Made by a program: the position numbers and the translations under genes
Assembly: GCF_000315625.1 (NCBI RefSeq)
Contig: NW_005434492.1
Coordinates: 1-46,869, forward strand
Origin: Guillardia theta CCMP2712
Taxonomy: Eukaryota; Protista; Cryptophyta
Length of the DNA stretch: 46,869 nucleotides
Reading direction: 5' to 3'
The notes under the pieces: generated by a model
The model's input: the letters and a program-made list of their open reading frames with translations, nothing else
What the model was told of the DNA's origin: nothing
Database searches by the model: none
In this document: positions 40,656-45,418 of the stretch, piece by piece
Position numbering within the stretch: position 1 is the stretch's first letter
Layout: each line of letters starts with the position of its first letter

Positions 40656-43600
40656 ATGTCAGCGTCGAGGCTTCTGGGTGGAGGAAGGACACATGGCAGG
40701 ACTTTGAGGCTCTTCGTAGCAGCCACCAGGACGTACGTTCGCTCAGTCGTAGAGCTGGGGCAGTCATCGCTAGTCCTCGAGTCAGGAAACCTAGCGAGGC
40801 TTGCGGATGGTTCTGCTTTCGTGCAGATGGGGAACCTCTCCATCCTTGGCACGGCGATGCGAAGGAGGATGGAAGCCTTTTACAGCAGGAGGAAACCGTT
40901 GCTGGTTGATTACCGTGAGAGGTCGGTGGCGGTGGGAAAGATCCCGATCACACAGAAGAGGCGAGAGCTGGGGTTCTCAGACGTCGAGCTGAAGACAAGC
41001 AGCATAGTCCAGCGAGCCCTCACGCCGCTGATGAACCAGGAGAACCAGTTTGACGTGCAGGTGTTGCTCACCCTCCTCTCCTCCGACCGGAACCTCGACG
41101 TCGAAACCTCCTGTATCAACGCAGCCTCCTTGGCATTAGGGGTAGCGGGTACTATCCAGGAGCCTGTAGGAGCTGTTTGCATCGCCAACATCGGTGACAG
41201 ACTTGTCGTCAACCCTTCTATCGACGAGAGAAGTGTTGCGGATGCGGAGCTCGTGTATGCTGGATGCAGAACAGGAGCCACCTTGGTTCAGTTCAGAGGG
41301 AGAGAGCTATCCACTAGTGAACTCAATGACATGCTCTATGAGGCAAGTAGTCACGTCATCAAGATCGTCAAGGCTCAAGCAGACATTATCTCCAACTTCG
41401 ATCAACAAGCTCCCACTGATGATCTCAGCTACGAAGAAATCTTCGAGCTGGGAGTTAAGATCAAGCCTTCCATCAAAGTTATCCCCACCAAAGAGCTTCT
41501 GCACACCGTCAGGATGGTTGCTGCACCCCAGCTCTCGCAGATCCTGCAGGACAGCGAGAGCTCAGCGCGAGGGAGGCTGGAGGGGATGTTGAGGTTGGAA
41601 CGCGAGACCGGCAGAGTCTTAATGGGAAACTCGGAGTATGTTTCCAGGTAGCTCCTCCTCTCCGTCTCCCCCCCCCCCCCTTCCCCCCCCCGCGCATACC
41701 CAACACATCATGATGCTCGGTTTGAGTCGAACTCCGACACCTGATACGATGTTGTGTTATGAGTTAACAAGTCAATGAGAATGAAGTTTCGTGTCGTGAG
41801 AATGTTGGCGATGATAAGATTTCTCTGCTCTTCGGTTGTTCTGTCTTGACTTGGACATGCTCGCAGGGAGTTGATAACAAGAAGTCTCAATAAGATTGTC
41901 GTCGGGGAGATTCACGACAACATTCGAGCTTCAGGACGACGGTGTGACGGGAGGAAACCGTTGGAAGCAAGGGCGTCGTCCTACGAGTGTCAAAGTGAGA
42001 GAAAACCAGGGGCTTCTCTTGGCCAGCTCCTCATGCTCTCTCTCAGTTCTTCCCGAAGTTCACGGCTCTACTCTAGCTGAGCTGGGAGAAACACAAGTGA
42101 GCAGCATGTGCATGCCCTCCCCCTCTGCCCTCCTCTGTTCGCCCCCCCTATCCTGCTTCCTCTCGCATGCCTGGTATGATCTCACTCCTCCTCCTCTCAC
42201 TCCCTCCTCGCCTCAGGTCCTCTGCTCCTGTGCGGTCGGTCGTCTCGATTTGAGCATGATGCGCGGGTGAAGGAGGAGGTGAGGAGGGGGGAAGGGGATG
42301 ACGTCGATGAAGGGGCTACATTCGAGGAGAGTATCTTCAGTCTCTCTTCGTCACCTGGGAACGTCCAGCGTCAGCCATTGCGACCGTCACAAACTCGAGG
42401 TCTGAGGGAGACGGGCCGGGCCTAGTCTGACCTCGTCCTCTAGCTTCTACTACGGGAAGTTGGAAGTTGATCGAGCTGAGGTAACTGGCGCTTGCTTTCT
42501 TGCCTGATACACTCACCTTCTCTCCTCCTCTCCCCCATCCTCCTCTTGTCCTCCTCGTCCTCGTCCCTCCTGCTCCTGGTCCTTTTCCAGCTCATCCACT
42601 CATCAATCTCGCCCGTTATGGATCAAGAATACTCTTATACTGTTCGTCTGCACTGCGACGTGCTCTCCTCCGACGGCAACGGCGTGATGGCTGCCGTCGC
42701 TCCAGGCGTGCTCGCCATGCTCAGTGCTGGGGTACGACTAGAGGTCTGCGCTGGAGGCAGTGACGGGCATGCAGGTGGCGCTCAAGAGGAGAGTGAGTGG
42801 TACGAGCGTGTGCGCAGTGAAGCGAACCTCGACAGAATGTGAGGGAGGGAGGAAGAGCCGATGGCAAAGTGACTCGTGCTGGAAGTCGAGGCTGAGGGGG
42901 AGGAGGAGGAGGGGGAGGAGCCGATGCTTATATTGGATCCGACTTTGATTGAAGAGGTGCGGAAGAAGAGGGAAGGAGGAGAGGAGGAGCTGAAAACTGG
43001 TGTAGGAGAATTGCTGCTACATCCTCAACCTGGCAGGGACTGAGAAAGGCATCACGATGATCAGGTAGCGATCGAGTTTGACTTGACTGGCTGAACTTGT
43101 TGGCTCTTTGCTCATGTCAGCCTTGACTTGCTGACGGGCAAACCTCCTCCCATCGACGTGATCGGTCAGTCTCTGCTCTGTCAGCCACGCGGTGACCTTG
43201 CGCAGAGGACATGGTCGACGTCGCTTACACGTCTGTCCGCCAAGAGCTCGAGACTATCAACGTCAGATCATCCTTTCACACCCCTCCTGACCCTCGTCCT
43301 CGTTCCTCTCTACCTCGTCACTCTTCTCCTCGTTTCTCTCCTTTTCCTCCTTCTCGTCCTCCTCTTACTCGCCCTCCTCCTCCTCTTCCTCCTCTTCCTC
43401 CTCTTCTTCCTCTTCCTCTTTGTCTCTTTTCTCCCCTTCTTCTCGTCGTTCTCGTCCCTCCCCCCCCCCCCCCCCTTGTATTTCTGTTCAGCTCCTCGTC
43501 CTGCTCAAGTCTCATTCTTCCTTTTCATCCCTCTCGTTCTTTTCTCCTCCTGCTCTCACATCTCCCTTCCCAGGAGGTCGAGATTGTCCCCCGAAAGCCT

Positions 43601-45418
43601 GTGGACGAGGAGGTGAAATTAGAAGTTGAAATCCCCGAGGGCTCGAGGTCGAAGTAAGAGGAGAGGAGGGAGGAGGGAGGAGGAGGATGACGGGTTGAAG
43701 GATCATCGCACTCCGAGGATCATCGATCTCTAACATCGAGGAGCAATTCGACTGCCAGATCAACATCAGCTCCAGAGGTGACTGATAACATGTGTAGAAG
43801 AAAGATGAAGTGTTGTTGTTGTTGTTGTTGTTGTTGTTGTTGTTGTTGTTGTTGTTGTTGTTGTTGTTGTTGTTGTTGTTGTTGATGATGATGATGATGA
43901 TGATGATGATGATGATGATGATGATGATGATGATGATGATGATGATGATGATGATGATGATGATGATGATGATGATGATGATGATGATGATGATGATGAT
44001 GATGATGGTACTGGTGGTTGTGGTAGTAGTGACGAGATGCCATGGAGATGTGAGTTCATTGATCAATCTGCAGGCCGGGTCATTCTCTATGGCAAGTCAG
44101 AAGATCAGCTGCAGGAGGCATCGGAGACGATGTTGAACCTTGTGGCGGTGAGGAGGAGGAGCATGGGGGAGGGGGAAAAGATCTCGTCAGCTGACGTCGT
44201 GTCTCGCAGCAGGGGCGGGCGGGGAGGAGGGAGGAAAAGGAGGAGGAGGAGGAGGGAGCTGAGGATGAACAGGACGATGACGTCATGGTGAATCGAAACC
44301 AAAGGAAGAGGCAGATGGTGGAGGAGGTGAGATCTTAGGTGGTTTAGCTCGTTTTCATGCCTGCTGTTGCGCAGGTAGAAGAGGAGGAGATTCAGCACGA
44401 ATTTTTACTTGAGATCCCTCCCGACGTGCTGGAACTGATCAATCAAAAACTCATCGGTTTACCTCCTTTTCTTCTTGTCCTTTCTGACTTCTCTCCCTCC
44501 CTCCCTCCCTCCTCTCCCTCCCTCCCTCCCTCCCTCCCTTCCTCTCTCCTGCCTGTCATTTCCACCCACTCCGCTCTCCTTGCGCTCTCTGCTCACGCTC
44601 TGCCCTCCAGGTCACGATGGCTCTCGCCTTCGCGCACTCGAGGTCATCACAGGAGCAAGCTTGACGCTGATGTCAGGTGAGCGCCGAGGGGAGGAGGAGA
44701 GGAGAGGAAAGGGAGAGAGGGAAAGAGAAGGGGGAAGAAGAGAGGAAGAAGAGATGGAGAGGAGAGGGAGAAAGGGAAACAGAAGGGGAAAAGAAAGGAG
44801 AAAGAGAGGGGGAGGAGAAGATAGCTGAGGAGGACGAGAGAGGAACAGAGGGAGAGAGACTAGAAGGAGAAAGAGGGGAGGTAGGAGTGGAGAAAAGAGT
44901 ATCAGTATTAGCGGTAGTGGTACTAGTGGGAGGGTTTGACAGGTGGGAGGAAGAGAGGTGGGAGGAAGAGGAGGTAGACAGGTAGAGAGCAGGAGGAGCA
45001 GGAGGAGCAGGGGGAGCAGACGGAGGATGAAGTAGGGTTCACAGTCTCTGCTCATTGAGTGCATGTTTGAGCAGACGGCATCCTCATCCGAGCTAAAGAT
45101 CAGCGGATTGCTCAGAGCGCGATCGCTGTTGTCAACGTCAGGGTCAAGGTCGAACTTCTTCTCCTCCTCCGCCCTCCTCCTTCCTGATTGCTCCTTCCTC
45201 CCTCTTCCCTCCTCCCCCTCACCACTCACATTCTCTTTCTTCCTGATAATTCCTGTCCTCTTCCTTGTCTTCGCTCCTTGTCTCCCCCTGGTGTGCTTCC
45301 CGTCAGCTCTTGCTCCCTGCTTCCTCGCCTGCTGTTCGCTGAGAGCTTGTTCGTGATGCAGGAGCTGACCAAGTCGATGAACCTCAGCGTGCCAAGGAAG
45401 GGGAGGTCGAGGAAGTGA
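40656..45418 (+). CDS. divergent polynucleotide phosphorylase (PNPase)-like protein, probably catalytically inactive, with two KH domains
   Basis: RPH1 motifs ESGNLARLADGSAFV, PLLVDYRER and KRRE. RPH2 motifs RCDGRK, LPEVHGST..GETQVL, YTVRLHCDVLSSDG and LAGTEKGIT. KH-like IIALRGSSISNIEEQFDCQINI and LIGHDGSRLRALEVITGASL. The N-terminus is Arg-rich and resembles a mitochondrial presequence. Confidence 0.85.
43810..44008. repeat. compound trinucleotide microsatellite (TTG)~25(ATG)~41 inside a PNPase-like intron
   Basis: Perfect adjacent runs seen directly. Confidence 0.97.
44680..45030. repeat. purine-rich low-complexity intronic tract
   Basis: Mostly A/G sequence after the donor GTGAG at ~44677. 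Confidence 0.8.

Follow-up and report, generated by a model that had tools for sequence, protein, structure and literature searches.

Polynucleotide phosphorylase (PNPase) has been regarded as phosphorolytically active wherever it occurs, and mitochondrial PNPases were described in a 2022 review as phosphorolytic exoribonucleases, contrasted only with the PNPase-less lineages that use DSS1 (PMC9181182). The gene GUITHDRAFT_120492 of Guillardia theta CCMP2712 lies on the plus strand at positions 40656-45418 of the window, by which we mean the whole stretch of 46,869 nucleotides that was analysed (contig NW_005434492.1). A sequence-only reading of this DNA had proposed a PNPase-derived, non-catalytic and probably mitochondrial paralog that binds RNA. 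In our analysis the favoured reading, to which we give a probability of about 0.72, is that of an expressed, catalytically dead, RNA-binding protein of PNPase fold, which probably serves in the mitochondrion as a ring or scaffold without phosphorolysis.

The Guillardia protein was aligned with E. coli K-12 pnp (locus L010), with the other PNPase of the same genome, found on contig C102, and with about 100 PNPases; non-human mammalian PNPT1 proteins were used for human-type residue numbering only. As judged from this alignment, the residues of the second RNase PH domain (RPH2) that bind phosphate, metal and the RNA 3' end are replaced (Table 1). The sequence-only reading had listed the absence of RREIGHG from the spliced RPH2, the replacement of the phosphate-binding SNGSSS by SDGNGV and of the metal-binding EDxxGDMDFK by EEENCCYILNL, and the change of IDRxxRP to VQRALTP in the first RNase PH domain (RPH1), and each of these substitutions was recovered, as were the E. 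coli residue numbers that it cited. Its statement that the residues needed for phosphorolysis are lost holds for R399, H403, S437-439 and D492; R398 is conservatively kept as a lysine and D486 is a glutamate, so not all catalytic positions are lost. In a 2025 review Arg446, Ser484, Asp538 and Asp544 are given as essential in human PNPase (PMC12599292). In mammalian numbering these correspond to E. coli R399, S439, D486 and D492, and in the Guillardia protein three of the four are replaced non-conservatively and the fourth is changed from D to E. When near-invariant positions were defined as the 109 columns at least 90% invariant across 97 canonical PNPases, the Guillardia protein was found to keep 58 of 108, versus at least 75% (median 97%) in the 97 canonical proteins. 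Kept are the RRE at the place of FFRRE, RxDGR, HGS, GETQ and many structural glycines and prolines, which is consistent with an intact fold and RNA path around an active site that has been dismantled.

GUITHDRAFT_120492 is expressed and spliced. The gene runs over 20 exons and 19 introns, from an ATG at 40656 to a TGA stop at 45416-45418, and begins with a long open reading frame (ORF; 40656-41651) carrying RNase_PH and RNase_PH_C domains, after which the coding pieces are short. The exons beyond those seen in transcripts were first read from the sequence, and the Hanusia phi protein and the database protein P0165 ('hypothetical protein GUITHDRAFT_120492') served to correct them. The 801-residue translation, free of internal stops, is identical to P0165; the frame, which had appeared intact over more than 15 exons, is therefore open over all 20. 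In public sequencing runs 36-45% of sampled words of the stretch were present, as expected for spliced transcripts. Transcript reads were placed on 40300-43800 only, leaving the 3' end of exon 15 through exon 20 outside the read coverage, and one transcript contig from each of the runs X1, X2 and X3, which belong to three studies, was found to span exons 1-15 with zero mismatches. Eleven introns (1-7 and 9-12) were directly skipped by transcript contigs and have GT..AG ends. The ends are likewise GT..AG in introns 8 and 13, which follow from the contig pieces, and in intron 14, which was fixed by a contig loose end where the sequence after 43778 matches 44075 onward. Given these junctions in exons 1-15, splicing does not restore the canonical motifs.

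The protein is built, in order, of a presequence-like N-terminus, RPH1, a helical domain, RPH2, a KH domain, an acidic linker, a second KH domain and a short basic tail. With exon 1 alone as query, the best sequence matches in the PDB were human mitochondrial PNPase chains (E 4e-33), followed by bacterial PNPases at about 1e-27. Pfam placed two RNase_PH, an RNase_PH_C and one KH_1 domain (609-665) above threshold on the full protein. The PNPase models scored far below their cut-offs, with 260.4 bits over profile positions 2-619 for TIGR03591 (equivalog cut-off 525.05) and 261 bits for NF008805 (cut-off 471), and the Rrp41 and Rrp42 models reached only 55 and 45 bits. An AlphaFold2 model made from a 104-sequence alignment had a mean predicted local distance difference test score of 85.8 and a predicted TM-score of 0.80, with disorder in the N-terminal 27 residues and in the acidic linker (675-713). 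When this model was searched with Foldseek, human mitochondrial PNPase came out on top (TM-score 0.90 by target, E 6e-52), ahead of bacterial PNPases. The modelled fold is accordingly that of a PNPase, with two RNase PH domains and a helical domain, and human mitochondrial PNPase is its nearest match.

Two KH-like domains and no S1 domain had been expected from the letters, and both expectations were borne out. In the model two type I KH folds (beta-alpha-alpha-beta-beta-alpha) are seen at 607-674 (KH1) and 717-792 (KH2), and S1 gave no Pfam match at E <= 1 on the full protein and no beta-barrel in the model. KH1 was detected by Pfam (E 3e-8) and has lost the first glycine of GXXG in its ALRG loop. 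KH2 has the loop GHDG and is sub-threshold in Pfam (E 0.12 in Guillardia, 0.019 in Hanusia), and its aligned counterpart in the metagenomic relative L022 is a KH domain with a Pfam E of 1.3e-14. No alignment was obtained between KH1 and KH2 by BLASTP, so that a recent internal duplication is unsupported. In L022 an ORF downstream of the PNPase core (4086-4535) holds two KH_1 stretches, and this relative may have three KH domains versus two in Guillardia.

Not only is the gene expressed, it is also under purifying selection, degenerate RPH2 included, and is not decaying. With its ortholog in Hanusia phi (P0151, 792 aa, transcript L021) the protein shares 72% identity and the same substitutions. 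By the Nei-Gojobori method the ratio of nonsynonymous to synonymous substitution rates (dN/dS) between the two was 0.17 overall, 0.134 in RPH1, 0.135 in RPH2, 0.17-0.21 in the KH domains, 0.49 in the presequence and 0.34 in the linker, values that are approximate as dS, at about 1.1, is near saturation. When exon 1 was compared exhaustively, without a profile, with 1.84 billion representatives, Guillardia and Hanusia made up the one close cluster, and four clusters of short metagenomic fragments were found that are 47-58% identical and share the odd RPH1 motif; all remaining matches were at most 39% identical. Longer relatives with the same substitution pattern were found on L022 and L024 (33% and 39% identity), two of the metagenomic eukaryotic contigs from which these fragments derive, where the pattern reads G-R-x-E-x-D/E-R/K-S-E, DG-A/S-G-V/I, and E-E-E/K followed by non-acidic residues. 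Two wider searches, one by a profile of all four family members and one by the protein from L024, were dominated by canonical PNPases and yielded no further named members.

In a maximum-likelihood tree Guillardia, Hanusia, L022 and L024 form one clade with a support of 100, on a stem of 1.83 changes per site that is long enough for long-branch effects to apply. The clade lies outside a group, supported at 99, that contains the bacterial PNPases and the C102 gene; the rows nearest to it by path are plant mitochondrial PNPases, and its exact place among the eukaryotic PNPases is not settled by the tree. As the same replacements occur in four sequences that form one clade, one ancestral loss is the simplest reading. 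Thus, of the proposal of a non-catalytic, PNPase-derived paralog, the non-catalytic part is backed by the lost residues, by expression and by selection, while by the tree the protein is not a recent paralog of the intact C102 gene. A further PNPase-like protein, P0012 (a EukProt Trinity transcript of 900 aa), has a degenerate RPH2 of its own (TQEEIQAG, GGSALS, EERICDANMT) and has kept S1; it sits on a long end branch at a position that the tree does not settle, and in it a PNPase seems to have been inactivated a second time, independently.

How might such a protein act? The first 30 residues contain six basic and no acidic residues and are without a signal-peptide-like hydrophobic stretch, and the same is true of Hanusia; by this composition the protein is probably mitochondrial and would be imported into that organelle. 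There it would be unable to phosphorolyse or polymerise RNA and could still bind it, as RRE, RxDGR, HGS, GETQ and two KH domains have been kept. Single-stranded RNA might be captured by the channel loop and by the two KH domains, and a non-catalytic ring or scaffold could then pass it to a SUV3 helicase or to a hydrolytic nuclease of the RNase II type; alternatively, the protein might act as a carrier, holder or protector of RNA. Possible partners are present in the genome, with one SUV3_C match (a SUV3-type helicase signature) and at least four RNB-domain loci.

Several points weigh against this reading, among them the near-saturated dS mentioned above. Exons 16-20 are supported by identity to P0165 and not by reads, and the mitochondrial assignment draws on N-terminal composition. 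Ring formation is uncertain, since the equivalent of human D135 is a Q in the Guillardia protein and the human D135G variant is listed as failing to form trimers (PMC12599292). Around the former catalytic centre K441 (an R in the relatives), E443, E539 and E540 persist, and new motifs (WExP, ExD/E-R/K and DGxG) are conserved across the family; acidic and basic residues that are invariant within the clade leave room for an altered enzymatic activity.

The last of these points is the ground for the alternative that survives best, according to which the protein is still an enzyme, a neo-functionalised PNPase whose remodelled RPH2 pocket does another reaction such as hydrolytic cleavage or another nucleotidyl transfer. 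In its favour W422, E443, E448, D476-G477-x-G479 and E539-E540 are invariant across four lineages, and selection on RPH2 is as strong as on RPH1. Against it, the phosphate-binding serines have become N, G or V, D492 has become I, S, C or L and K494 has become N or H, so that the replacements vary between family members, unlike a newly fixed catalytic constellation; furthermore, we know of no precedent for an RNase PH fold that works hydrolytically. We consider this alternative unlikely.

The sequence-only reading had also raised the idea of an inactive subunit in a heterotrimer with an intact PNPase. Six-frame searches of the 87-Mb assembly revealed only two PNPase cores, GUITHDRAFT_120492 and the C102 gene, and the catalytically intact paralog that was to be looked for therefore exists, as exactly one copy. 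The C102 gene (about 81640-84511, minus strand; L009 5640-8511) encodes about 924 aa in three exons with two introns, retains all motifs (RREIGHG, GSSS and EDxxGxMDFK) as well as KH and S1 domains, and groups with bacterial PNPases. Since PNPase rings are trimers, a mixed ring of the two proteins can be envisaged. The C102 protein, however, has at its N-terminus a hydrophobic segment that resembles a signal peptide (...HAQA, then W) and after it a stretch rich in Ser and Pro. Cryptophyte plastid leaders usually take this form, so plastid targeting is suggested, and GUITHDRAFT_120492 has no such hydrophobic segment; the two proteins would thus probably reside in different compartments. They are moreover far diverged, as C102 falls inside the bacterial PNPase group and the four-member clade outside it. 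A heterotrimer is therefore very unlikely. If both compartment assignments are true, the Guillardia mitochondrion is without an active PNPase.

That the gene is a pseudogene, or that its true transcript restores the motifs, has nothing to recommend it beyond the motif loss itself and is the most improbable of the alternatives, both forms of it having been rejected in view of the open frame across 20 exons, the spliced transcripts from three studies, the dN/dS of 0.17 and the same motifs in the Hanusia transcript and two metagenomic relatives.

With the mitochondrial PNPases of animals and plants (PNPT1 and plant mtPNPase) the Guillardia protein shares its fold and the succession of RPH1, helical domain, RPH2 and KH; these enzymes are its best matches in sequence and structure, the plant mitochondrial rows are nearest in the tree, and a presequence-like N-terminus is shared. 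It differs from them by the loss of R399, H403, S437-439, D492 and K494 (E. coli numbering), by E in place of D486, by having no S1 domain and a second KH domain after an acidic linker, and by its long stem branch and low TIGR03591 score. From the C102 PNPase, of the same family and genome, it is set apart by the retention in the latter of RREIGHG, GSSS, EDxxGxMDFK, KH and S1, and by that gene's two introns, signal-peptide-like leader and bacterial grouping.

A functional analogy can be drawn with Exo9, the exosome core of yeast and animals, an RNase PH-fold ring that has lost phosphorolysis and is kept as a scaffold through which RNA is threaded to hydrolytic nucleases (PMC5735172). In both cases an RNase PH-fold assembly would have been retained after loss of phosphorolysis. 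Exo9, in contrast, is made of six separate RNase PH-like subunits (Rrp41- or Rrp42-like) and three cap proteins, and in the Guillardia protein one chain of PNPase type carries the KH domains fused to it; this protein is from a different lineage and probably organellar. Loci for exosome-type RNases PH are found elsewhere in the genome. Fungal RNase II/Dis3-like pseudonucleases (PMC8097288) are exoribonuclease homologs without catalysis that persist as RNA-binding proteins; they have the unrelated RNB fold and belong to another lineage.

A literature search on GUITHDRAFT_120492, on PNPase with Guillardia and on inactive or pseudo-PNPases returned nothing relevant; the gene model is already public, and no paper describing the protein was found. 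A conserved clade of dead PNPases would separate, in a natural protein, the non-catalytic roles of PNPase (RNA capture, a carrier or chaperone function, the proposed RNA import) from catalysis, and would be, after the exosome, the second case in which an assembly of RNase PH fold has outlived its chemistry. More tentatively, and we regard it as doubtful, the mitochondrial PNPase of cryptophytes and of some protists known only from metagenomes may have been converted into a catalytically inert ring that threads RNA together with SUV3 and a hydrolytic nuclease. If true, the loss of phosphorolysis by the exosome core would have been repeated independently in an organelle, and mitochondrial 3'-5' decay would have a third state in addition to those based on PNPase and on DSS1. 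The interest lies mainly in RNA decay and organelle biology, where the question arises of what breaks down RNA in cryptophyte mitochondria. Names like 'Polynucleotide phosphorylase 1', which databases give to proteins of this family, probably overstate their function.

Table 1. Parts of GUITHDRAFT_120492 in window coordinates, and residues of the Guillardia protein that align with E. coli PNPase (UTR, untranslated region).
Feature	Position	Strand	Basis or remark
5' UTR	40573..40655	+	contig starts: 40573 (two runs), 40596 (one run)
Exon 1 (aa 1-330): presequence-like N-terminus, RPH1, most of helical domain	40656..41647	+	transcript contigs, P0165
Exon 2, retained RCDGR at 41940-41954	41867..41994	+	contig joints, P0165
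Exon 3, retained HGS and GETQ	42047..42096	+	transcript contigs, P0165
Exon 4	42217..42266	+	transcript contigs, P0165
Exon 5, VTWERP where HYNFPP is expected	42313..42399	+	transcript contigs, P0165, alignment
Exon 6, GKLEVDRAE (42454-42480) replacing xRREIGHGx	42444..42480	+	transcript contigs, alignment
Exon 7, SDGNGV replacing SNGSSS	42591..42731	+	transcript contigs, alignment
Exon 8	42775..42838	+	contig pieces
Exon 9, ends at E539-E540 (E. coli E485, D486)	42886..42956	+	upstream joint 42838>42886 from contig arithmetic, GT..AG
Exon 10, ENCCYILNL (43006-43032) replacing HLGDMDFKV	43006..43064	+	transcript contigs, alignment
Exon 11	43121..43164	+	transcript contigs
Exon 12	43206..43261	+	transcript contigs
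Exon 13, KH1 start at 43613	43574..43653	+	transcript contigs
Exon 14, ALRG at KH1 GXXG position (ALRGSS within 43708-43725)	43701..43777	+	transcript contigs
Exon 15	44074..44147	+	start: contig loose end; end: database protein
Exon 16, acidic linker	44210..44326	+	identity to P0165, Hanusia linker length; outside placed reads
Exon 17, KH2 start (from 44396)	44375..44456	+	P0165, structure model
Exon 18, KH2 GXXG loop GHDG (spanning 44456/44611-44621)	44611..44676	+	P0165
Exon 19, remainder of KH2	45075..45148	+	Hanusia comparison, P0165
Exon 20, basic tail and TGA stop	45362..45418	+	P0165
Microsatellites in intron 14: abutting perfect (TGT)~25, then (TGA)~42	43811..44007		sequence
KRRE at E. 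coli 78-81 position (FFRRE segment)	40956..40967	+	R79/R80 equivalents kept in all family members
VQRALTP replacing RPH1 IDRxxRP	aa 118-124, 41007..41027	+	alignment
GKLEVDRAE and LIHSS	aa 440-453, 42454-42480 and 42591-42605	+	replaces RREIGHG region
SDGNGV	aa 475-480, 42669-42686	+	replaces SNGSSS
EEENCCYILNL	aa 539-549, 42951-42956 and 43006-43032	+	replaces EDxxGDMDFK
E. coli R93 (RPH1)	S116
E. coli D96 (RPH1)	Q119
E. coli R97 (RPH1)	R120		kept
E. coli R100 (RPH1)	T123
E. coli R398	K441		conservative; R in three relatives
E. coli R399	L442
E. coli H403	R446
E. coli S437, S438, S439	N478, G479, V480		relatives N/A/S, G, V/I
E. coli D486	E540
E. coli D492	I546
E. coli K494	N548

Of the 19 introns, ten measure only 41-56 nt, and all but one of these cluster in the part of the gene that encodes RPH2 (41648-43205); the longer introns are filled with CT- or GA-rich simple repeats. 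In the raw RNA run X16, 80 reads were placed, mostly on low-complexity intron sequence, and these were uninformative. Sixty-three reads of this run had a backward joint (42533>42185), with many loose ends in the CT-rich intron repeats between 42185 and 42533, which is most likely due to cross-mapping of low-complexity reads and not to a real rearrangement. Downstream, a convergent ORF of 356 aa on the minus strand (45596-46666), with NIR_SIR and NIR_SIR_ferr domains of the nitrite/sulfite reductase type, ends at 45596, 178 bp past the stop codon of the PNPase-like gene.

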